A DNA stretch of 64,000 nucleotides from Pseudomonas aeruginosa PAO1 (GCF_000006765.1 NC_002516.2); one strand, 5' to 3'. Numbered from the stretch's first letter, positions 7,885 to 21,171 are shown. Made by a program: numbers and translations. Notes: generated by a model from the sequence alone, not told the origin.

Positions 7885-8265
7885 ATGAAGAACGCAATGG
7901 CCCTGACCCTGGCCGGCCTGCTGGCCGCTCCTTCCCTCGGCTTCGCCGCCGCGCCGGACGCAGTGATGGTCTTCGCCCGCCAGGGCGACAAGGGCAGCGT
8001 GTCCGTCGGCGACAAGCACTTCCGCACCCAGGCCTTCAAGGTCCGCCTGGTGAATGCGGCGAAGAGCGAGATCAGCCTGAAGAACAGCTGCCTGGTGGCG
8101 CAGTCCGCCGCCGGCCAGTCCTTCAGGCTGGATACCGTGGACGAGGAACTCACCGCCGATACCCTCAAGCCGGGCGCCTCCGTCGAAGGCGACGCGATCT
8201 TCGCCTCCGAAGACGACGCGGTGTACGGCGCATCGCTGGTCAGGCTGAGCGACCGGTGCAAGTAG
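7885..8265 (+). CDS. Secreted hypothetical protein (DUF4354-like)
   Basis: AAGGA RBS, Sec signal peptide MKNAMALTLAGLLAAPSLGFA, conserved-looking C-terminus. Confidence 0.8.
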   Translation: MKNAMALTLAGLLAAPSLGFAAAPDAVMVFARQGDKGSVSVGDKHFRTQAFKVRLVNAAKSEISLKNSCLVAQSAAGQSFRLDTVDEELTADTLKPGASVEGDAIFASEDDAVYGASLVRLSDRCK

Positions 8266-8284
8266 GCGACTAGCCGTTGCGCAG

Positions 8285-8316
8285 CGAAAGCCGCAGGGCA
8301 GCCTCGGCGGCTTTCG
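8285..8316 (+). terminator. Hairpin downstream of the DUF4354-like gene
   Basis: CGAAAGCCGC ... GCGGCTTTCG 10-bp arms. Confidence 0.5.
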
Positions 8317-8498
8317 GGTGCGAGGAAACGGCTTTCGAAGGTTTCGGCGCGAATCTGAAATCATTCAGGGCGCGTTTCCGGTGCTTCTGGTTGCCTGGGC
8401 TGGGGGCCGAATTCCAGATACCCGGGGCCTAGGGGAGGGTAGACATCGTTCCAGGCTGCGCCCGAGCGAGGCGCTCGACCCACAAGGCACGCCCGGCC

Positions 8499-8534
8499 CC
8501 CTCTCCCGCGTGCGGGAGAGGGTTGGGGTAAGGG
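8499..8534. repeat. REP-like palindromic element
   Basis: CCCTCTCCCGC-GT-GCGGGAGAGGG followed by TTGGGGTAAGGG, a form of short interspersed palindrome common in proteobacteria. Confidence 0.6.
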
Positions 8535-10584
8535 CCAGCAGCACAATACCCGCCAACACCAGATTCCAAAAACCGAATCCGCACCACTCAAGCCGCGACT
8601 ATTGCGGTTAGCAGCGGGGGAGGTTGTGGTTCTGCGGGTGGCAATAGAGGTGCCCACCAGATATGGGAGAGGCCATGGCTTAGGGAGGGAAGGGCTGTAT
8701 ACGGCCACCCGAACCCCACCTCCAGGAGAAAGCGGACGGTCAATTCTGTATATAAATCCCCCCTTTTCGCTATCGAGATGGGCGGCTCGCTGCTCGCCAG
8801 CCGCGCTACTGACCTGCTTTTCGCAGTCAGGCTGCGCTCACCTGACGCTGCGCCCCCAGGTCCAGGTGAGCGCAGCCCGACGGCTAACTCAAAGGCCCAA
8901 CTAAGCGGTGACATTCGTCCTTTACACTCACGCGGGCCGAACCTGGAGCATTAAAGATGGGAATGGCCCAGCGGCTCACATGCGAGGAGTCGATAAGGCG
9001 GCCTGGCCATACGCGTACCGGGGGCCACGTCATAGTCGCTCGATTTCTTCCGCCCTGAACCAGTTGTTGCGCAGCGCCGCCGCAATGAGCGCTTCGGGAT
9101 CCTTCGTGTAGGCCACCAGCGCCAAGCTTTTCTGGGCACGAGTGCAGGTCACATATAACAGGCGACGCGTGCGCACGGTGCCCTCTTCAGCCGTGTCAGC
9201 AGGAGTTTTACGACTAGCTCCTGTCGCTGGTGTCGCTTCGAATAATTTGTCGTAAGAAAACAGAAAGCCGCGTGCATCGCTATCGTCGAGGATCACCAGG
9301 ACACGTTCAAACTCCAGGCCTTTCACACCCTGATGTGTACCGAGGGGCCCTTTATCACTGACGTATTCCGCGAATGGGATCGACTGCCTGTACGGTGTTT
9401 CCAGGAATGCTCGCCAGGCCTCCAAGCTCGCAGGAGACCTCTCTTCCGGCGCGTCTTCTTCGCCCGGTGCGCTCTCATCGCCGGCCAGCTCGACATCGTT
9501 TTCTTCAGCTCCATTCGCAACAAATGGGCGTAGCGCATCAGGAATCTCGAATAAACGATGTTTTGCGACGCATTCCAACACGGCGAGGAAAGTGGTTTCC
9601 TGGCCGTCAGTATCCAGGGTAAGCAGTGCTTCTACAGCGGCGCGAATCGGTAATAACGGATCATCCGTGTGCGCGAGCCGAGCGATAGCTGCACGCTGGA
9701 GAAGCGGCGAGGTCGCGCGCAGCTGCGCCATCACTGCGAAGTCATCCTTCATACGCGCGGCGGCAATCAGCGGGGCGACTCTATCGGTGAATAATCTGAG
9801 CCCGGCTAAGTCCCCTGTGCGCAGACCTGTCGATAGGCGTGAATCCTGGTTGAGCGCCTGGAACATCTCCAAGAAGCCACGGCGTGATGCCGCCATGTGA
9901 TGTTCGAGCGTCAGCGCTTTGACCGCAGCCTCCTCACGCCACTGGAGATCGTTACACAAGTCGGCCATTCGATCGCGCGCGCGCCGCTCAAGTGCAGGCT
10001 TATCAAGGACATCGCTGGGAGACACAAAGAGACGGACAATACCGATTTCGCTGTCTTCGCGGGCTACCTGGTATTGGCCATCAACAGGCTCTCTTAGCAC
10101 ATTGCCGAGGGCAATCACGCGTTGGGGGGAACGATGGTTAAGGCGCTTAGCCGGACGCGCCCAGTCTGCGGGAACCAGACGCTCCAGCTCGGGATGACCA
10201 TCCAAGAAAATGCGTTGCATGGTATCGCCGAATAGGCCAATCGCGAACTTGCCCTTGTGTGCGGCAGCTAGGGCAAAGAAGGCTTCTATCAGCCCTCTAT
10301 TCGTATCCTGACTCTCGTCGATAAGCAAGAAGGGAAATCTGTTAACCAAGATCGCTTGCATCGATGGTTTGGTTTCAATGAACGCAGCGGTGATTTTCAG
10401 CACCTCTGCGTGGGATAGCGAGTCCTGACCAAAATTATCGCCGTTGGGGCTGTAGGTAAACCGCCGAGGAACACTGAGCCACTCAATCCGTTGCATCGTG
10501 GAAGCGATGGCCCTCTCGCTGTAGTGGTCTACTGATCCCGGACACCGATTTAGGCGAAAATCCTCGCCGTGAGAGAGGTGTCTG

Positions 10585-11747
<1,163 letters not shown>

Positions 11748-12224
11748 CCACTACACGCGGTCTTGCGCGGCCTTGGTGCCAGAGCGCCCCTTCGCTTGCT
11801 TCTCGCGTAGGTCGGCAAGCTCAACCGGAAGTCTGTTGAGGAGCCACGCCTGGATATCACGATGGTAGGCCTCGATATGGCGCCAGCAGAAGCTGTGGAT
11901 CGTCGATATAGGAAACAGCGGATCCTCTCCGACACGTTCGGCGATTTCGTCGGCCGCGACGTTCGTATATGTAATGACCGCGATCTTCTTACCAGTCCGC
12001 CTAAAGGTCGCGCCATGATCTTCGCGAAAGGTGTCGAGCGCCCTTTTCAGAGAGCGCGTCTTACCGGATCCTGCCCCGGCGTAGAGAAAAAAGCTTTGCG
12101 GCGCGGCGGGATTCAGACAGGCCCGTATCTGTACGTCGGCGCTCTCATCGAAGTCTGGCGCGGCCGTTTCAATGATCATGCTAATCCTCTGCTCCCTGGA
12201 TTTCGCTCTGGGCGATGTCCTTAC

Positions 12225-14339
12225 CTACCGCCCCTCATCTCCGGACAGATCCTGAGCGACAATGCCGCGAACCTTGGCCGAGGTGATCGAACCTTCGATC
12301 TTTCCAGCGACTGCCAAATTCTCCAGGATCAAGGCGTCCTCAAAGGTTCGCGGAATGATGAGGTCGCTGTCTTCGGAAGCACCCTTCACGTTGACTGGCT
12401 TTTGATAGGCGACATACAGCTCATAGTCGCCGCCAGCCGTTGAAATGTGTCCATCGGGCGGTAGCGCGACGAGTTCATCAATAAGCTTTTTCCCGGGGTG
12501 CCAATCTTTGAGAACTGAGTTTGCGGTTTGCTGAGCTTTGCCCTGCTCGGGGCGAGCCGACTTCCAACGAGTTGTTTCTCGCATATTTTTATCGATAATC
12601 TTAACCGCCGTTGTGGCATCCAGATCGCCAATGATCAGCGTCGCGATGCCGAGCGCGTCGACTAAATTGCGGAAGCTGTGCACGTGACTTCCGCCGAGTT
12701 CGAGCAACGTAACGTAGCGCCGCGACAGCTCTGGAAAATGATGGCGGATGAAGTGAGGCACCAGGATGCGCTCCGCCTGTCCCTCGACGAAGATGACGCC
12801 GTCTGCGAAGAAGAGATCGCAGTGGGTCGCCTTGAGGTAGCGTTTCACGAAGCGCTTTGTCTCGTCCCCATCACCGAAGATGTAGGACAGATTGGCCACC
12901 GTAGTGGTCGGCGTCTCCCCCATGCTGGCCGCCGGCCGGCGCCGAAAATAGCGTAAATTGGCGAAGTCAGCTTCGTGCGCGACGTGACTCGAGTGCGTAC
13001 TGACGATCAGTTGAGTGCAATAGTTTTCCGCGACACCCAGATCGGCGTGCTTTCGGAGTAGTGTATAGGCCTTGTTAATGAAGACCTGCTGGACCTGTGC
13101 ATGAAGATGGGCTTCGGGTTCCTCTACTAGCACGAGGTGCAGTGGCTGTATCTCGTGTGACACGTCGGCCCCCTCGAGAATGCCGGCTTTCTCTACGCGC
13201 ATCCACTCGTCGCGGAAGCCCATCAACATGAACACCATGGCAATCAGGTTCTGATACCCGAGCCCCGAATAGTCCTCTGGTAGTTGGAGGGTGTTGCTGC
13301 CGTCCCCTGAAGGGTCTGCAACCTGGTACTGCACGGACGATCCATGCTTGAGCCCATCCGTTCCCCGAAGAAGGGTCGAGATCTTGAGCTTGGGATTACT
13401 CATGCCTGGATAACCCAGATCCTCTAGCTCTTGAAAGGCAGCGGAAAAGCCTTCCTCAAGTCGCGCGTCAAAACTGCGCTCAGCCGCTTGAATTGCTCCG
13501 AGCGCTTCATAGTCCTTGTCCGATGGCGTCTTCGTCGGGTCGAGATGGCGATCATAATAGGAGCGTAACTGGTCTGAGAGGCGACGTTTGAACCGACGAT
13601 TGTTCGCCTCCCCCTTGTCTTCACCGCCGTCACTGCTGCTAGCGTCGGCGAAGTCGCGCTGCGCGGCGATTTCGTCAATCTTGATGAGTTTTTTGAATGG
13701 TGGATGCTCGAACGCAAGTGCGCTGGCGGGGAGCCTTTGCGGCGTCGCGAGGCCGCTTCTTCCCGGCGGAACAACAGCAGCCGGGTCAAGGGGATAGGCT
13801 AGGAGTTCAAGATGTGCTCGCAGCCGACGCTCCAGAAAGTCTGTAAGGTTGCGTGGCCAGACTGCAATCTTGATCGACTCACCGTTCGGCCCAACGATAG
13901 CCGCGTCCCGCGCCGCAGTTCGTTGCGCGATATATTCGCTCTTGAGTTTGTCGAGATTTTTTATTCGAAACGCTAGTCGAACCCCCAGCAGCCCGCCGGA
14001 CCAATCTAACGTTGGTAGGATATCGACGACGTGCTGGATCTCGCGGAGCGGAACGTCAAGCCAGACATCCAGCGAGGGAAGCAGCGAATCCAGATCGACG
14101 GTGGGCTCCGCACCGGCTTCCCACTCGCTCCCCAGTAGATCAATCTTGGTCCAATTTGCAATTGTGACGTCGCGAAGATTCAAGCGCGTAGGTGATAGTA
14201 GGAAGATGCGCAGCGCCAGCATTGCAGAGGTCTTTCCGCTGTTGTTGGCACCGACCAGAATCGTCGTGTTTTTATCTAAATCGAGATGGGTAGACTTCAG
14301 CTTTCGGAAATTGGAAATCTCCACAAACTTGATTCGCAT
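12225..14339 (-). CDS. gajA: OLD-family ATP-dependent TOPRIM nuclease, Gabija GajA (possibly C-terminally truncated)
   Basis: Walker A GANNSGKT, Walker B/D-loop VEEPEAHLH, H-loop STHSSH, TOPRIM VIFVEGQAE and GDLD, TFEDAL; GGAGGT RBS; directly upstream of the UvrD-like gene. Confidence 0.85.
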   Translation of the reverse strand: MRIKFVEISNFRKLKSTHLDLDKNTTILVGANNSGKTSAMLALRIFLLSPTRLNLRDVTIANWTKIDLLGSEWEAGAEPTVDLDSLLPSLDVWLDVPLREIQHVVDILPTLDWSGGLLGVRLAFRIKNLDKLKSEYIAQRTAARDAAIVGPNGESIKIAVWPRNLTDFLERRLRAHLELLAYPLDPAAVVPPGRSGLATPQRLPASALAFEHPPFKKLIKIDEIAAQRDFADASSSDGGEDKGEANNRRFKRRLSDQLRSYYDRHLDPTKTPSDKDYEALGAIQAAERSFDARLEEGFSAAFQELEDLGYPGMSNPKLKISTLLRGTDGLKHGSSVQYQVADPSGDGSNTLQLPEDYSGLGYQNLIAMVFMLMGFRDEWMRVEKAGILEGADVSHEIQPLHLVLVEEPEAHLHAQVQQVFINKAYTLLRKHADLGVAENYCTQLIVSTHSSHVAHEADFANLRYFRRRPAASMGETPTTTVANLSYIFGDGDETKRFVKRYLKATHCDLFFADGVIFVEGQAERILVPHFIRHHFPELSRRYVTLLELGGSHVHSFRNLVDALGIATLIIGDLDATTAVKIIDKNMRETTRWKSARPEQGKAQQTANSVLKDWHPGKKLIDELVALPPDGHISTAGGDYELYVAYQKPVNVKGASEDSDLIIPRTFEDALILENLAVAGKIEGSITSAKVRGIVAQDLSGDEGR

Positions 14340-14578
14340 AGCACCTCCCGTGTGCCTGAGCTTTCTCGCAGACGAGCGCAGCGTTTAGTTGTAATGCCTC
14401 ATCTCTTTTATTCATTGCCAAATTAGTTGCGACGAGAATAATGCCTTCAAGTACTGCGTTTCCAGGCCTTCCGACAGCAAACGCTAGAGCTTGGCATCAG
14501 GGGTATCTAATGTCGGCTTATGGCCGATTCTGGCCATTCCCGATCAGCGTAACACCAAGCACTCCTCCCCCTAAACCT

Positions 14579-15718
14579 TCACCCATTCCTCCCTAACCTA
14601 TACCCACTGACCGCCTCGTAAACCGCCTTCCGCAACCGGTTGATCCCGCCGATCGGCCGATGCTCCGGCAGCGCGTGCCAGGGGTTGAACGAAAGGTTGT
14701 CACAGAACAGGTTCTGTTCCCGGCTATCAAAATCCTGAGCTGGCACAATGATGTCGGCTATGGTAGCGAAGGGCGCGTCCGACTCCTTCCATTCGACGCT
14801 GGTGTCTTCGATGGGCATGTACTTGGCCGGGTCCTGGCGCTGCACCTGGAAGGCGTAGCAGGCGGGGGTGCGGTCGATGGAGAGTTGCTGGTACAGGGCG
14901 GCGCGGAGGAAGTTGGGCAGGTCCTGGTTCTGCTTCGGTAGCTGGTAGGCCGGGCATTTCTCCGGGGCGGGGACGACGCGGAACTTGATGTTGTGTTCGC
15001 CCAGCTTGTACGGCGAGATGCCGTTGTAGCCGGCGTGCAGCGGGCTGTCCGGGGCGGGGGCGAGGGTGCGCAGGGCGATCAGCAGGTGGCGCAGTTCCCA
15101 GCTGGCGGGGTTCCAGTTGGGGAAGAAGGCCAGGGCTTTCTTGCCGTCGGCCTGGGCGGCGAAGTTTTGCCGGTATTCGGCGATGTCGCGGATGAAGAAC
15201 ACCGGCTGGTTGAACATGACGAAGTCCTGCTCGCCGTCATGGCCGCGGCCGGGCAGGAGTTTTTCGCCGGGCACGTCGAGCAGCTTGATGGCCATGCCGC
15301 GCGCGTCGTTCTTGCTGTCGAACTGCGGGTAGGCGTTGCCGTTGGAGAAGCGCACCCAGGCGTTCCAGCTTTTGCCCGGTTCGGCGAACACGCCGCGACG
15401 CAGGGTCGGGTCGAGGTCGGCGCGTACCTTGAACTCGGCCTTCACGCAGCCGTGGGCCTTGGCGTGGGCATCGCGCAGGACGCGGGTGTTGTCGCGGTGC
15501 TGTTCGACCACGCGGATGGCGTCCTGGATGATCGCCTGGGTGATGCGGGCTTCGTCCGGGGCGATCTGCTCTTCCGCGGACACCGGGCCGGAGAATTTCC
15601 AGGCGTAGTAGAGGCTGCCGATGGCCCAGCCGCCGAGGCCGACGGCCAGCAGCAGGAGGAGCAGGCGGCCGAGCCATTTGCCGAGGAACAGCCAGGCGTG
15701 GGTGAGGGGTGCGCGCAT
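14579..15718 (-). CDS. Catalase-related heme protein with N-terminal membrane anchor
   Basis: RDAHAKAHG (distal His), VRFSNG, RGMAIK, DFVMFN and C-terminal RPIGGINRLRKAVY (proximal Tyr); start placed at MRAPLT. Confidence 0.82.
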   Translation of the reverse strand: MRAPLTHAWLFLGKWLGRLLLLLLAVGLGGWAIGSLYYAWKFSGPVSAEEQIAPDEARITQAIIQDAIRVVEQHRDNTRVLRDAHAKAHGCVKAEFKVRADLDPTLRRGVFAEPGKSWNAWVRFSNGNAYPQFDSKNDARGMAIKLLDVPGEKLLPGRGHDGEQDFVMFNQPVFFIRDIAEYRQNFAAQADGKKALAFFPNWNPASWELRHLLIALRTLAPAPDSPLHAGYNGISPYKLGEHNIKFRVVPAPEKCPAYQLPKQNQDLPNFLRAALYQQLSIDRTPACYAFQVQRQDPAKYMPIEDTSVEWKESDAPFATIADIIVPAQDFDSREQNLFCDNLSFNPWHALPEHRPIGGINRLRKAVYEAVSGYRLGRNG

Positions 15719-15896
15719 GGAGTGGGTGTCCTTGGTGGTGTGCGTTGGCTGTGGGCTTTTATTCTTCTTGGGCGGGGAGTGCGCCACGATTGCTTCTCCC
15801 CGTCCTCTGGCTAGGCGTCCCCCCTGAAGGGAGAGGGGCTGCTAGGGGTGGAGAGGGGCGGCGGCGCCATGCCTCGCGCTTCTCCATTTCCCAGGT

Positions 15897-17792
15897 TCAG
15901 CGTTGCGCGGTCCGTTGCTCCGGCGCCGGGCATTTCGGGCCGGGCGTCCAGGGTGGGGTCTGGGCCGGGACCAGGCGGCGCTCGAATTCGGGGTTGCCGA
16001 GCACCTTCAGGTATTCCACCAGCGCCCAGCGTTCTTCCGGGCTGAGGGCGCGGCCGATCACGCCGTTCTGCCGGCAGCCGTCGCGGAATTCGTGGCCGCT
16101 GTTGCGGTTGCCGGTGAGACGGGTGTCGAGGAGGAAGCCGCCGGGGAATTTCTCGGTGCGGAATCCAACGAATTTCGGATCGAATTCGAAGGTGCCGACG
16201 TAGAACTGCGGCGAGCGTTCGGCGGCCGGGGAGAGCAGTTGGAACAGGTTGGGCACCGAGCCGTTGTGCAGGAACGGCGGAGTCGCCCAGACGCCGTCCA
16301 GCGGGCGGGCCTTGTAGGCGCGCAGTTCCTGTACGCCGATCGGCAGGTCGAAGCCGTTCATGGTCTTTTGCTGTTCCGGCGGGATGCCGGCGTCCCGGTA
16401 GGCGCGCTGCTCGACGAAGGCGGTGATGTAGGCCAGGCCCTTGGCCGAGGACAGTTGCGAGAGGTCGAGTTGCTGCGGATCGGCGCCGATCAGCTGGACG
16501 TTCATCCGCGCCAGTTCGTCGACGCTCCAGCCGAGCTTGCGCAGGTCGTAGCGGTGGTCGGCGATGTTGTCGGCGGTGGTCGGATCGGTGCCGATCACCT
16601 CGGTCGGCACCATGTGCATGCGCCACTCGGGATTGCGTCCGGGGGCGGCGTATTCCGCCGGTTGCACCTTGGGTGCATGGCAGAAGGCGCAGTTGGCTTC
16701 GAACAGGGCGCGGCCCTGGGAGGCGCGTTGCAGGTCGATGCGGCCGAAGAGGTCTTCCGGCCAGGTCGGCGGTTTCAGTTGTTGCAGGGTTTCTTCCAGG
16801 GCGTGCAGGTCGTGGAGGCGTACGCTGGAGGCGTAGCGCTGCTCGCCCCGCAGCGGCTGGCCGTGCTCGTCGAAGATCTGCAGGCGCGCGCCGACGCCGA
16901 GGGCCTCGCCGATATTGCGCGCCATCGGCTGCATGGCCGAGCCGTTCCATTGCACCCAGTCGAATTTCCAGATGTCCCAGACCTGCGGATAGCTCACCGG
17001 GGCGTTGGCGACGCGGTAGTTGCTCGGGTCGATGGCATCGCCGAAGACGCTGTTGGCGATGCGCCCGAAGGCGTCGGTGCGGCCGGGGCCTTCCTCGGTG
17101 GGGTAGAGGTGGCGGCGGGTGTCGTTCCAGGCGGTGCGCAGGAGGGTGTCGAGGACGGCCTTGAAGTCGGCGCGCAGTTGCGACTTGTCCTGTTCGTAGC
17201 GTTCGCCGAGGACTTTCCTGGCGAAGCGGTTGAACTTGAACGGGTTGTAGTAGGTGGCGGCCATGCTCGCGCCGAGCGCCTGGCCGAAGGCGCCGCCGCG
17301 CAGGGTCGGCACGGTGGCGGCGATGGAGTGCATGGCGGCGCCGCCGTCGATGCGCAGCGACTTGCCCTGGTAGCGCAGTTCGCCGGTGTGGCAGGCGGCG
17401 CAGGTGATGTCCAGGTAGCGGGTGCCGGTCTTCTCGTCGCGGTGCTGGCTGAAGCCCACCGGCAGGTTGCCGGGGTTGAGGTCGCTGGCCTTCTGCTGCG
17501 GATCGACGAGGAAGCCGAAGCGGGCGAGGTATTCGGGGGCGGCGAAGGGTTCTTCGGAGAAGGGCAGTTCGAGGGCGGTGAACCAGTCGTAGTGCAGGCC
17601 TTTCACCAGGGTACCCTGGGGCGTGTAGTAGAAGCGCTGGCGGGCCTCGTCCTGCCATTGCGGCAGGTAGCGTACCTCGCTCGGCGCCTGGTAGTGGGGG
17701 AGGTTGGGATTGGCGACGTAGTAGACCACCACCCCGACGACCGCCAGCACGATCACGCCGACAACCAGCAGAGCCTTTTTCACGGTGCGCAT
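15897..17792 (-). CDS. Diheme c-type protein of the RoxA/cytochrome c peroxidase-like superfamily
   Basis: Two CxxCH motifs (CAACH, CAFCH), YKARPLDGVWATPPFLHNGSVP motif, N-terminal hydrophobic anchor. Confidence 0.85.
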   Translation of the reverse strand: MRTVKKALLVVGVIVLAVVGVVVYYVANPNLPHYQAPSEVRYLPQWQDEARQRFYYTPQGTLVKGLHYDWFTALELPFSEEPFAAPEYLARFGFLVDPQQKASDLNPGNLPVGFSQHRDEKTGTRYLDITCAACHTGELRYQGKSLRIDGGAAMHSIAATVPTLRGGAFGQALGASMAATYYNPFKFNRFARKVLGERYEQDKSQLRADFKAVLDTLLRTAWNDTRRHLYPTEEGPGRTDAFGRIANSVFGDAIDPSNYRVANAPVSYPQVWDIWKFDWVQWNGSAMQPMARNIGEALGVGARLQIFDEHGQPLRGEQRYASSVRLHDLHALEETLQQLKPPTWPEDLFGRIDLQRASQGRALFEANCAFCHAPKVQPAEYAAPGRNPEWRMHMVPTEVIGTDPTTADNIADHRYDLRKLGWSVDELARMNVQLIGADPQQLDLSQLSSAKGLAYITAFVEQRAYRDAGIPPEQQKTMNGFDLPIGVQELRAYKARPLDGVWATPPFLHNGSVPNLFQLLSPAAERSPQFYVGTFEFDPKFVGFRTEKFPGGFLLDTRLTGNRNSGHEFRDGCRQNGVIGRALSPEERWALVEYLKVLGNPEFERRLVPAQTPPWTPGPKCPAPEQRTAQR

Positions 17793-18020
17793 CAGGAACG
17801 TCCTTGTAGGCCTTTTTTGGGCACCGTTATGCCAAGGCGTTGGCATATTGGCAAGCTGCTATCAGCTTTTTTGACAAGGTTTTCTTGACAGCGAACGGGT
17901 GAAACGTTTGCGCAGGCCTCGCCTGGCGATGTTGACGACGAAAGCTCGGTATTTCACCGGAGAAAGGCGGGACGCCGGAGCGTCTTGGAACGGCAGGGCG
18001 AGGCGCCAGCGGCCTGCCGG

Positions 18021-18107
18021 TCAGAGACCGGAGAAGGCCAGCCAGGCGATGATTGCGGCGTAGAGCATCCAGGTGGGATCGGTACGGCGGTCGAGCAGGG
18101 CTTTCAT
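18021..18107 (-). CDS. Putative 28-aa small membrane peptide (not in the ORF track)
   Basis: MKALLDRRTDPTWMLYAAIIAWLAFSGL; GGAGGT RBS; ATGA overlap with the upstream ORF stop. Confidence 0.6.
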   Translation of the reverse strand: MKALLDRRTDPTWMLYAAIIAWLAFSGL

Positions 18108-18238
18108 TTCTTCACCTCCGCGCTCCAGAAGCCCTGGGCGTTGCGGAAGGGCTGGCGGGCCAGTTGTTCCAGGCGGGTGATGCCGTCGGCGCGCATGGCA
18201 TTGATCAGGGCCGAGAAGGATTTGGCGGAGTAGCTCAT
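18104..18238 (-). CDS. Small hypothetical protein (44 aa from the RBS-supported ATG)
   Basis: MSYSAKSFSALINAMRADGITRLEQLARQPFRNAQGFWSAEVKK; GGAG RBS; typical codon usage. Confidence 0.7.
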   Translation of the reverse strand: MSYSAKSFSALINAMRADGITRLEQLARQPFRNAQGFWSAEVKK

Positions 18239-18395: not shown

Positions 18396-19493
18396 TCATT
18401 CCGGGTTGAACAGGATCACCGCCGCGCGCAGCTTGCTGCGGCCGAAGCGGCTCATCTTGTCGAACTCGGCGTGGCTTACCGGGATGTGCTGGCAATCCAG
18501 CGGCTGGCGGTGCTGGCTGTGGTCGACGTCGGGATCGTGGAGGTAGACGAAGTCCTCGTCGTAGTGGGTGACCAGCACCCAGTGCGGGGCCTTGGAGCGG
18601 GTCAGGCGGTAGCTGCTGATCAGCACCAGCGGCTGGCCGCCCCTGGCCAGCTGGCGTGGGATGTCGAGCCTGGCCGAGCGCTTCTGCTCGACGCCCGAGG
18701 CGTCCAGTTCCTCGCAGAAGTCCTCGTGGACCAGGCGCATCACCGCCTTCTTGTCTTCGTTGCGTACGCCGTCGAGGAACAGCGGGCCGCCGGCGGACAG
18801 CACCAGCTTGACCCGGAAGCCGCGCCGCCAGGCGGCCAGCGCCAGGCCCTGGGGGCTACAGCCGCCGTGCCCGGCGGTCATGTAGATGGTGGTCGCCTCG
18901 CGCCACAGGCGCAGTTCCTCGCGGCGGGTCAACTGGCGCTCCGGTTGCAGCGCGCCCATGGCCATCAGCAGGCAGGCCGGGCCGCAGGTGAAATCGGTGG
19001 TCTGCCGGTAGAAGGGCACGTGGCGGCGCTGGTCGTGGCCGGGGTTGCGGATGCGTTTCTCGAAGCGCAGCGCTTCGCTGTGGTCCTCGTAGTAGTCGCG
19101 CACGGTGGCGAAGGGACGGTAGCCGTTGCGCTCGTAGAGGGCGATGGCGCCACGGTTGTCCGGGCGCACTTCCAGGCGCATGTAGGCGCGGTCGTTGTCC
19201 CGCGCGGCCTGCTCGGCGGCTTCCAGCAGCTTCTGGCCGAGGCCGATGCCGCGGGCGCGCGGGTCGATGGCGATGGAGTAGAGGCGGGCCAGCGAGGTGC
19301 CTTCGTGGAACAGCACCAGGGCGTAGCCGAGCACGCCGCCGTCGCCCTCGGCTACCGTCAGGCTGGCGTGGGCGCGGGTGAGCATCCACTGGAAGTTGCG
19401 GCGGGACAGGCGATCATAGTCGAAGCAGCGGTTTTCCAGCTCGACCAGGGCGGACAGGTCGTCCACACCGGCCGGGCGGAGGGTCAGGTTCAT
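18396..19493 (-). CDS. GNAT acetyltransferase fused to a C39-like peptidase domain
   Basis: N-terminal RimI-like GNAT (RARGIGLG, LEVRPDNRGAIALY); C-terminal QTTDFTCGPA, HWVLV and HDP (Gln/Cys/His/Asp). Confidence 0.85.
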   Translation of the reverse strand: MNLTLRPAGVDDLSALVELENRCFDYDRLSRRNFQWMLTRAHASLTVAEGDGGVLGYALVLFHEGTSLARLYSIAIDPRARGIGLGQKLLEAAEQAARDNDRAYMRLEVRPDNRGAIALYERNGYRPFATVRDYYEDHSEALRFEKRIRNPGHDQRRHVPFYRQTTDFTCGPACLLMAMGALQPERQLTRREELRLWREATTIYMTAGHGGCSPQGLALAAWRRGFRVKLVLSAGGPLFLDGVRNEDKKAVMRLVHEDFCEELDASGVEQKRSARLDIPRQLARGGQPLVLISSYRLTRSKAPHWVLVTHYDEDFVYLHDPDVDHSQHRQPLDCQHIPVSHAEFDKMSRFGRSKLRAAVILFNPE

Positions 19494-19683
19494 AGCGGTC
19501 TCCACGGCCGCGGGCGGGAACTTCCGCGCGGGCGTGCTGTAATGGGTGCTGTACGCTTCGGTTTGCTGGCAGGCGCCATAGAGCGGTTTCGCAAGGGATT
19601 CCCGCCGAGTATTGGCCGGGATGCGTGCGCCGGCAAGCCGGTTCCGAATGCGCCGTGGTTTCGCTGTCACCCCGGGAGGTGTC

Positions 19684-21171
19684 GTGAGCAAGCTGTTCAT
19701 CATCGTGGAACGCAAGGAAGACTGGACGTCCTATTACCCCAGCGAGGATGTGGTCACCGCCCAGGAATACCTGGAACTGCCCATCGACGACGACACTGGC
19801 AAGCGGGTCCAGGTGATCAACCTGTGCCGGCACTACAAGTACCTGCGCCATGGCTACTACTGCTCGCTGCTCGCCGAGGCGCGCGGGCACAAGGTGATCC
19901 CCTCGGTGCGGACGATCAGCGAGCTGGCCAGGAAGTCGCTGTACAGCCTGGTCCTGGAAGATCTGGATCGCACCCTGGACAAGGCCCTGGCCGCGCACCC
20001 CTACGGCAGCACCGATGGTTTCACCCTGACCCTGTATTTCGGCCGTACCGATATCGAGCCGCTGCAGGACCTGGCGCGACAACTGTTCGAGGCGTTTCCC
20101 TGCCCGTTGCTGCTGGTGGAGTTCAAGCGCAACCGCACCTGGCACATCGAGGGCATCAAGCCCGGCGCCATCCACAAGCTGCGCGAGGACCAGGAAGACC
20201 TCTTCGCCAACGCCCTGGACAGCTTCAGCCGGCAGATCTGGCGCAAGCCGCGTTCGCGCAAGCCGTTCCGCTACGACCTGGCGATCCTCCACGACCCCGG
20301 CGAGGCGTTCCCGCCCTCCGACGCCAAGGCGCTGAAGAACTTCGTGCGGGTCGGCCGCAGCCTCGGCATCGACGTCGACCTGATCGAGCGCAAGGACTAT
20401 TCGCGGATCGCCGAGTACGACGCGCTGTTCATCCGCGAGACCACCAATGTCGCCGATCACACCTACCGTTTCGCCAAGAAGGCCGAGAGCGAAGGGTTGG
20501 TGGTGATGGACGACCCGGTGTCGATCCTGCGCTGCACCAACAAGGTGTACCTGGCCGACCTGCTGCGCAGCCACAAGCTGGGCATGCCGGCCACCGAGAT
20601 TCTCTACAAGGAGAACCCGCAGGAACTGGAGAAGGTCGGCGAGCGCCTGGGCTTCCCGCTGGTGCTGAAGATTCCCGACGGCAGCTTCTCGCGCGGGGTG
20701 ATCAAGGTGGAGGACCAGGAGCAGTTGCTGGCGGCCAGCGCCGAGCTGTTCGAGCGCTCGGTGCTGATCCTTGCCCAGGAGTTCTTCTATACCGAGTACG
20801 ACTGGCGTATCGGCGTGCTCAACCGCAAGCCGATCTTCGCCTGCCAGTACTTCATGTCCAAGGGCCACTGGCAGATCTACGACCACAGCCCGGACGCCGA
20901 GGAGGTCAGCGGCGATTTCCGCACCATGCCCGTGCACGAGGCGCCGCGCAAGGTGGTGGAGCTGGCGGTGAAGACCGCCAATCTGATCGGCGACGGCCTC
21001 TACGGGGTGGACCTGAAGCAGGCCGGCGACAAGGTGGTGGTGATCGAGGTGAACGACAACCCGAACATCGACTGCGGGGTGGAAGATGTCTACCTCGGCG
21101 ACGACCTCTACAAGCTGGTCCTGGAGGAGTTCGTCCGGCGCCTGGAAGTCAAGCGTCGCGGCTACGACTGA
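19684..21171 (+). CDS. RimK-family ATP-grasp ligase with N-terminal RLAN-type domain
   Basis: GTG start with GGAGGT RBS; YYCSLLAEARGH; ATP-grasp motifs PLVLKIPDGSFSRGV, QEF, YGVDLKQ and IEVNDNPN. Confidence 0.87.
   Translation: MSKLFIIVERKEDWTSYYPSEDVVTAQEYLELPIDDDTGKRVQVINLCRHYKYLRHGYYCSLLAEARGHKVIPSVRTISELARKSLYSLVLEDLDRTLDKALAAHPYGSTDGFTLTLYFGRTDIEPLQDLARQLFEAFPCPLLLVEFKRNRTWHIEGIKPGAIHKLREDQEDLFANALDSFSRQIWRKPRSRKPFRYDLAILHDPGEAFPPSDAKALKNFVRVGRSLGIDVDLIERKDYSRIAEYDALFIRETTNVADHTYRFAKKAESEGLVVMDDPVSILRCTNKVYLADLLRSHKLGMPATEILYKENPQELEKVGERLGFPLVLKIPDGSFSRGVIKVEDQEQLLAASAELFERSVLILAQEFFYTEYDWRIGVLNRKPIFACQYFMSKGHWQIYDHSPDAEEVSGDFRTMPVHEAPRKVVELAVKTANLIGDGLYGVDLKQAGDKVVVIEVNDNPNIDCGVEDVYLGDDLYKLVLEEFVRRLEVKRRGYD

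Follow-up and report, generated by a model that had tools for sequence, protein, structure and literature searches.

In Pseudomonas aeruginosa, the oleate 10S-dioxygenase PA2077 and the 7,10-diol synthase PA2078, which make up the oleate-diol synthase pathway and have been placed in a 'FadCcp' subfamily (PMC4496055), give rise to oxylipins that serve as a cell-to-cell signal and favour both biofilm formation and virulence (PMC5155153, PMC6377657). RoxA of Xanthomonas sp. 35Y (4b2n) is a secreted enzyme that cleaves rubber (PMC4877957). In the coral systems AOS-LOX (allene oxide synthase-lipoxygenase) and HPL-LOX (hydroperoxide lyase-lipoxygenase), a hydroperoxide made by a dioxygenase is converted by a catalase relative (PMC5617202, PMC10813956), and in Nostoc punctiforme a cyclooxygenase-like 10S-dioxygenase works with a separately encoded catalase-related hydroperoxide lyase (PMC13049297); on this role of catalase-related proteins, the literature agrees with an earlier note made on the DNA studied here. 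In the present work we describe two genes, PA1941 and PA1940, which span positions 14579-17792 of a 64,000-nt stretch of the P. aeruginosa PAO1 genome (NC_002516.2; hereafter the window, to which coordinates refer) and encode a diheme c-type cytochrome and a catalase-fold protein. We hold with high confidence that they form a conserved, extracytoplasmic and functionally coupled module of two haem enzymes.

In all 25 genomes of the genus that were sampled, the two genes lie side by side with the diheme gene first. Among 401 genomes drawn evenly from the class, adjacent pairs turned up in a further genus of the family as well as in two species belonging to a distant one (G419, G232 and G391). 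A catalase-like gene also adjoins the diheme gene in all four sampled genomes whose diheme protein belongs to the PA1941 clade. When 185,579 species genomes were scanned with a 14-sequence alignment as the query, 80 loci encoding the closest catalase-like relatives were returned. Of the 76 loci with upstream DNA on the contig, 65 have a diheme gene of the NF040606 type immediately upstream in the same orientation, and the other 11 have no upstream diheme gene; the set is biased to the paired clade, the query alignment having been built from it. Grouped by record names, 33 of the 65 paired loci lie outside Pseudomonas, Stutzerimonas and Atopomonas, and the paired loci include members of Arenicella, Pseudoalteromonas, Thalassotalea, Colwellia, Woeseiaceae, Halieaceae, Methylophaga, Methylophilaceae and the acidobacteriotal Terriglobales. 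In taxa other than P. aeruginosa the two genes may touch or overlap, with stop and start codons overlapping at several of these loci, and the catalase-linked diheme proteins form two separate, well-supported clades in a tree of 51 family members.

Natural fusions go further. The protein P0240 (942 amino acids) carries a diheme part at residues 47-571 and a catalase-like part at 617-936, and belongs to a cluster of 65 members with full-length copies on several contigs, whose named members are metagenome-assembled genomes of Planctomycetota. P0203 (1043 amino acids) has the reverse order, with the catalase-like part first. Both keep the two CxxCH motifs and the catalase His/Tyr motifs, and P0240 also keeps the GH-F histidine discussed below. 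The earlier note had proposed co-occurrence beyond P. aeruginosa as a test of its idea, and the pair proved to be kept across phyla and fused in some organisms; because adjacency and order are so widely maintained and fusions exist, we conclude that PA1941 and PA1940 work together. That they are unrelated genes and mere neighbours might be argued from the 178-bp gap between them in P. aeruginosa and from the break of one RNA assembly inside that gap, but order and strand in the 65 loci, gene overlap in several taxa and two independent fusion architectures contradict this, and we regard it as extremely improbable. Chance adjacency, as such, was rejected on the strength of the natural fusions. 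A complex prediction for the two soluble domains, run without controls, scored 0.00 and carries no weight for or against binding.

PA1941 reaches 595.1 bits on NF040606 ('di-heme-cytochrome C peroxidase'), for which the cut-off is 150, with residues 64-614 covering positions 1-523 of the 524 in the profile, and it also matches the Pfam domain RoxA-like_Cyt-c (PF21419); given this score and the wide conservation of the pair, the observation is not due to chance. The motif set of NF040606/FadCcp proteins is complete in PA1941, with two CxxCH, W-A-T-x-P-x-x-H-N-G-S and a C-terminal G-H-x-F, and the motifs read by the earlier note were all confirmed, the two CxxCH as CAACH at residue 131 and CAFCH at 368, and WATPPFLHNGSVP at 502-514. 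Among 32 family members, C131, C134 and H135, the second haem motif, W502, A503, P506, L508, H509 and N510 of the WATPPFLHNGSVP region, and G566 and H567 are invariant. The WATPPFLHNGSVP region aligns with residues 510-522 of RoxA and, weakly, with bCCP and 6e1c, and GHEF aligns with GHDF near the RoxA C-terminus; H641 of RoxA has been named as a haem-associated histidine (PMC4496055).

The AlphaFold model of PA1941 has a predicted local distance difference test (pLDDT) score of 88.5. RoxA (4b2n) is the sole significant solved relative, with E-values of 3.6e-09 for the single sequence and 9.7e-31 for the profile; it was matched to the model by Foldseek at E 4.3e-12, though with a TM-score of only 0.44, and by VIA with Z 15.9 and a root-mean-square deviation of 3.8 over 402 aligned residues (model 47-598). 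Both haem motifs, the WATPPFLHNGSVP region and the C-terminal His of PA1941 have aligned counterparts in RoxA, and the claim of the earlier note that the superfamily includes RoxA and the oleate enzymes holds, as PA1941, PA2077 and PA2078 all match NF040606. PA1941 is not, for all that, an equivalog of RoxA, RoxB or RoxC, a candidate assignment that was rejected because on the respective models (NF050033, NF050034 and NF051462) it scores only 56.1, 57.4 and 67.1 bits, where 1000, 900 and 900 would be required. No PA1941 equivalents could be mapped for F317 and W302 of the RoxA active site, and RoxA ~200-337 lies outside the profile alignment. We know of no catalase-like partner for RoxA.

Resemblance to RoxA could nevertheless mean that PA1941 cleaves an isoprenoid, a carotenoid, a quinone side chain or another alkene in the manner of RoxA, leaving PA1940 to clear peroxidic side products. 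RoxA is the best structural relative, the Pfam domain bears its name, and a membrane anchor would suit isoprenoid lipids, but the equivalog scores fall far short, the family model shared with the fatty-acid enzymes is the one that scores 595 bits, and the lipase and acyltransferase genes neighbouring related pairs suggest acyl lipids, so that we consider such cleavage quite improbable. A second alternative starts from the diheme core. MauG and the classical diheme peroxidases superpose on PA1941 with Z 11-12 over ~220-245 residues, in the core only (MauG ~12; the MauG-like 6e1c, 10.8), and the region of their FHxGS-type motif matches weakly. MauG-type enzymes act on proteins encoded next door, and PA1941 might, like MauG or MbnH, oxidatively mature or cross-link PA1940 or its haem, or pass electrons to PA1940, a partnership that adjacency and fusion would suit equally well. 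PA1941 is twice the size of the bacterial diheme cytochrome c peroxidases and MauG, has RoxA-type insertions and gives no match to Pfam CCP_MauG at E <= 0.01. Against action on the partner protein, the closest relatives of PA1941 by family and fold (RoxA and PA2077/PA2078) act on small or polymeric lipids. Moreover, four unrelated oxidative enzymes are found as partners of the catalase-like domain, which thus has no need of a diheme maturase, and many catalase-like relatives stand alone. A protein-directed role is, in our judgement, very improbable.

The nearest comparison genome, G001, which shares 75% of the sampled words of the window and has the pair at 100% (PA1941) and 99% identity, contains three further NF040606 genes, scoring 491, 530 and 453 bits. 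We take the first two, which lie in tandem, to be PA2078 and PA2077, since their CxxCH spacings of 235 and 245 residues and His365 in the second motif of PA2078 are as described (PMC4496055); the corresponding spacing in PA1941 is 237. P. aeruginosa thus has four NF040606 diheme paralogues, namely PA1941, the PA2078/PA2077 tandem and a third, 568-residue protein with a signal peptide (the 453-bit match), which appears uncharacterised; in G001 the paralogues lie on L033 (2304-6122) and L034 (2179-3885). Spacing, family, the WAT-P-HNGSVP and GH-F motifs and a periplasmic location, in the case of PA1941 a predicted one, are common to PA1941 and PA2077/PA2078, as would be the two-step logic, in which a dioxygenase is followed by an adjacently encoded hydroperoxide-converting enzyme. 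The differences are equally clear. In the midpoint-rooted family tree PA1941 sits in a 22-member clade (SH-aLRT 100), across the root from PA2077 and PA2078, with which it shares 32-34% identity over the N-terminal half; it is membrane-anchored, whereas PA2077 and PA2078 have, by eye, an apparently cleavable signal sequence; and its partner is a catalase-fold protein instead of a second diheme protein.

In PA1940, the Pfam Catalase profile is matched with 45.5 bits at positions 24-142 of 383 only, the N-terminal third. The AlphaFold model (pLDDT 96.5) has a catalase core of ~330 residues, which VIA-align places nearest coral allene oxide synthase (1u5u, Z 28.6 over 303 residues; 3dy5, Z 28.4), followed by MAP-2744c of Mycobacterium avium subsp. 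paratuberculosis (3e4y, Z 27.4) and true catalases (~25). Profile search (3e4w, 1.4e-20) and Foldseek (3e4y, 5.5e-16, TM 0.76 of the target) both put MAP-2744c first. His85 and Asn170 align with the distal His and Asn of human catalase (HMMER), and the full catalytic set of true catalases, distal His/Asn and proximal Arg/Tyr, is kept; the distal His and proximal Tyr announced by the earlier note are His85 and Tyr367, as the alignments to human catalase and 3e4w confirm. In a set of 120 diverse relatives, every member has R82 and Y367, while H85 is found in 118, R363 in 119 and N170 in 72. Just before the distal His, 73 of these relatives have Ala, 18 Gln, 14 Val, 4 Ser and none Thr. That PA1940 is a full true catalase was rejected, since Ala84 replaces Val, the Pfam match stops short and PA1940 reaches only 15.5 bits on the HPII equivalog, for which 1102 are required. 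The family is large, with 4430 clusters at 50% identity (E <= 0.001), and some of its more distant clades lack a catalytic residue: in alignment A1, the distal His is Asn in L028, L027 (2931-4124) and L032 and Phe in L016, a LodA fusion, and the proximal Tyr is Met in L030 and L031, in which Thr-His is present. Such clades may differ from ordinary haem enzymes.

With coral allene oxide synthase and the Nostoc lyase, PA1940 shares a catalase core of ~330-370 residues, the distal His and proximal Tyr, and linkage or fusion to a dioxygenase, PA1940 standing next to an NF040606 diheme gene and its subfamily being fused to cyclooxygenase-like domains. It differs in that the partner is a diheme cytochrome c and not a relative of lipoxygenases or cyclooxygenases, in its predicted membrane anchor and periplasmic location, and, from the coral enzyme, in having Ala-His for Thr-His at ~17% identity. 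MAP-2744c, a 33-kDa protein with the same minimal catalase core, aligns with PA1940 through its Arg-x3-Tyr at ~21% identity, but PA1940 adds a membrane anchor and the conserved diheme partner. MAP-2744c reportedly has organic-peroxide-dependent peroxidase activity.

Near the N-terminus of each protein lies a single strongly hydrophobic segment of 19 residues (Kyte-Doolittle 2.96 in PA1941 and 2.01 in PA1940), with three K/R before it, one after it and no further segment of the kind, and in both models the segment forms a long N-terminal helix. From these features, both are predicted to have a single N-in/C-out anchor. Because maturation of c-type cytochromes occurs outside the cytoplasm, both catalytic domains should face the periplasm. 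The four cysteines of PA1940, all kept among close relatives, are in line with an extracytoplasmic protein, short of proof.

The substrate is suggested by the company that these genes keep elsewhere. Two types of extended operon recur. In type A, genes for a TPR protein and then an SMP-30/gluconolactonase-like (paraoxonase-like) propeller come before the diheme and catalase-like genes (propeller in 18 loci, TPR in 13); in type B, found in nine loci, an LCAT-like lipase precedes the diheme gene, sometimes a membrane acyltransferase (Acyl_transf_3) follows it, and the catalase-like gene comes last. Catalase-like proteins that share 41-44% identity with PA1940 occur in fusion with dioxygenase domains of the cyclooxygenase-like type. 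Pfam classes these domains as An_peroxidase, and JGI names the proteins prostaglandin-endoperoxide synthase; among PDB entries the domains match PGHS-2 best, at 6e-43, while peroxidases reach 1e-14 to 1e-18. In Algoriphagus, the subfamily is fused to an SRPBCC/Polyketide_cyc2 domain, a hydrophobic-ligand domain, and the fusion-partner regions of P0214, P0229 and P0236 have no match in Pfam or NCBIfam. Lipases, acyltransferases, a lipid-binding domain and cyclooxygenase-like partners together indicate lipid substrates.

We envisage, as a reading that is plausible yet slightly short of probable, that PA1941 oxygenates an unsaturated lipid and that PA1940 converts the resulting hydroperoxide, as family, fold, fusions and neighbours suggest. 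At the periplasmic face of the inner membrane, PA1941 would use O2 to form a hydroperoxide of an unsaturated, probably membrane-associated lipid, with a fatty acyl or an isoprenoid chain, and PA1940, through its Tyr-ligated haem, would then rearrange, cleave or reduce this organic hydroperoxide. The second step is modelled on the catalase relatives that act beside lipoxygenases and cyclooxygenase-like dioxygenases.

Several observations weigh against this reading. PA1940 has Ala-His in place of the Thr-His that the title of Mashhadi, Newcomer and Brash 2016 (ref 158 in PMC10813956) gives as the hallmark of catalase relatives acting on fatty-acid hydroperoxides. Fusions to DyP peroxidases occur in the catalase-like subfamily of PA1940 too, and domains further removed from it (28-29% identity to PA1940) are fused to LodA-type lysine-epsilon-oxidases, which form H2O2; because these fusions indicate H2O2 handling, the catalase-like family probably covers both H2O2 and lipid hydroperoxides. 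By its place in the tree PA1941 is a paralogue, not an orthologue, of PA2077 and PA2078. Diheme orthologues in G161, G278, G189 and G148 have no catalase-like gene within a few kb or genome-wide (PA1940 query, E <= 1e-10). One RNA assembly of four breaks between the two genes, as detailed below, and a literature search found no functional study of PA1941, PA1940 or their pairing. The two-step extracytoplasmic system suggested by the earlier note therefore stands in part: coupling, family and lipid-related neighbours and fusions favour it, while the absence of Thr-His and the DyP and LodA fusions, which fit peroxide scavenging, tell against it.

The same observations bear on a different role, in which PA1940, as a small catalase or peroxidase, removes H2O2 or unspecific organic peroxides that its oxidative partner enzyme produces or that would damage this enzyme or the membrane on its periplasmic side, and the pair serves oxidant defence or self-protection, with no biosynthesis. 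Besides the DyP and LodA fusions, such a peroxide guard would agree with the presence of all four catalase catalytic residues, with the Val-His of true catalases in 14 of the 120 relatives, with the peroxidase label that NCBI gives to NF040606, and with the mention of PA1940 among antioxidant proteins (PMC13295329) and as a 'putative catalase' (PMC6429555). On the other hand, PA1940 itself has Ala and not Val before the distal His and has nothing past the catalase core, the solved structures nearest to it at this size belong to catalase relatives other than true catalases, and those NF040606 proteins that have been characterised act as an oxygenase and a hydroperoxide isomerase and not as peroxidases (PMC4496055). 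Lipids are also suggested by the contexts with a lipase, an acyltransferase, SRPBCC or cyclooxygenase-like domains. We consider a guard function unlikely, though it deserves serious attention, and even if the pair were no more than that, it would still be a widespread periplasmic antioxidant module.

The kinds of protein involved are known, as a FadCcp/RoxA-type diheme oxygenase, a catalase relative, and tandems of a dioxygenase with a catalase relative have all been described; what is new is that a diheme protein is combined with a mini-catalase, that both are membrane-anchored, that the distal site is Ala-His and that the module is so widespread. We tentatively suggest, while regarding it as rather doubtful, that it is a third, unrecognised bacterial tandem of dioxygenase and catalase relative, distributed over Pseudomonadota, Acidobacteriota and Planctomycetota, which at the outer face of the cytoplasmic membrane would turn membrane or exogenous unsaturated lipids into a new class of oxidised lipid, either a signal or a remodelled membrane lipid, and which in P. 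aeruginosa would be a second oxylipin system, controlled by AmrZ, beside PA2077/PA2078. If so, a second, membrane-bound system in which a paralogous diheme protein is joined by a catalase relative would broaden the biology of bacterial oxylipins, and a function would be gained for two genes present in all genomes of the genus that were sampled and for a catalase-like family with thousands of clusters. It would also mean that the catalase fold has been recruited beside at least two, and possibly three, unrelated classes of fatty-acid dioxygenase, and the Ala-His site would probe the Val-His versus Thr-His rule of substrate choice in this fold.

The gene names follow from the PA1940 peptide of PMC13295329, which contains cysteine and was found in the catalase-like protein, and from the downstream OLD-family gene, which matches PA1939 (PMC3946381). 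Translation gives PA1941 as 631 amino acids (ATG at 17792, stop 15897-15899) and PA1940 as 379 (ATG at 15718, stop 14579-14581), and re-translation and hydropathy bear out the two co-oriented genes with N-terminal membrane segments at the positions given in the earlier note. Start codons were picked from orthologue N-termini, the PA1941 orthologues of the genus beginning at an equivalent Met, and AAGGA stands ~10 nt 5' of both. A scan for terminators and promoters found no terminator-like or sigma-70-like site between the genes or just upstream. PA1941 has been listed as directly repressed by AmrZ, with -4.87-fold in RNA-seq and an enrichment of 3.28 in chromatin immunoprecipitation (PMC3946381). 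In three public RNA assemblies the whole stretch lies in one contig, which is no proof of a single transcript, and the fourth (run X22) breaks at 15690-15783, in the spacer. In the same run the PA1940 contig continues as far as gajA, and its mean word depth exceeds that of the PA1941 contigs; as assemblies cannot rank expression, this is no more than a hint that PA1940 may have a promoter of its own. The features of the locus, with related fusions and operons, are collected in Table 1.

Table 1. Features of the PA1941-PA1940 locus and its surroundings (window positions), with related fusions and operons elsewhere
Feature	Position	Strand	Basis or remark
PA1941, membrane-anchored diheme c-type cytochrome (RoxA / FadCcp-like)	15897..17792	-	NF040606, Pfam RoxA-like_Cyt-c PF21419, AlphaFold
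PA1941 N-terminal membrane anchor (predicted), residues 8-26	17715..17771	-	hydropathy 2.96; model helix 2-27; kept in orthologues
PA1941 first haem motif CAACH, residues 131-135	17388..17402	-	aligns with first CxxCH of RoxA
PA1941 second haem motif CAFCH, residues 368-372	16677..16691	-	invariant in family
PA1941 WATPPFLHNGSVP, residues 502-514	16251..16289	-	conserved MauG/CCP/RoxA signature region
PA1941 GHEF, residues 566-569	16086..16097	-	His567 = candidate sixth ligand of second haem
Spacer PA1941-PA1940, 178 bp	15719..15896	-	no terminator-like or sigma-70-like site
PA1940, membrane-anchored catalase-fold haem protein (mini-catalase)	14579..15718	-	Pfam Catalase, model, structural matches
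PA1940 N-terminal membrane anchor (predicted), residues 19-37	15608..15664	-	hydropathy 2.01; model helix 3-41
PA1940 RDAHAKAHG, residues 82-90; distal His85 after Ala84	15449..15475	-	aligned with human catalase RVVHAKGAG
PA1940 FNQPVFF, residues 169-175; distal Asn170	15194..15214	-	aligned with human catalase NTPIFF
PA1940 NRLRKAVY, residues 360-367; proximal Arg363 and Tyr367	14618..14641	-	aligned with RTLVY of 3e4w
gajA, intact	12225-14339	-	PADLOC GajA 848 bits
gajB, N-terminal piece	11751-12179		profile 5-139; gene split by IS3-type insertion
gajB, C-terminal piece	9030-10622		profile 137-623
IS3-type insertion in gajB, orfA	10585-10893	+	
IS3-type insertion in gajB, orfB	10902-11747	+	
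Other catalase-like fusions	L016 1930-4869; L017 1168-4116; P0188, P0213, P0215, P0224		LodA, DyP or SRPBCC partners
Type A operon, examples	L052, L055, L062, L065, L067, L069, L084		outside Pseudomonas
Type B operon, examples	L071, L074, L077, L078, L086, L088, L097		outside Pseudomonas

Directly downstream of PA1940 lies a Gabija defence system (9030-14339) of lower GC content (0.57-0.61). The DNA past the catalase-like gene differs between the window (~8000-14500) and G001 (L035 12300-16000), and the pair therefore borders a variable region. On the other side, between PA1941 and a GNAT/DUF3335 gene (18396-19715), two very short open reading frames of ~44 and 28 codons, the second of them hydrophobic, are found at 18020-18238 on the minus strand.

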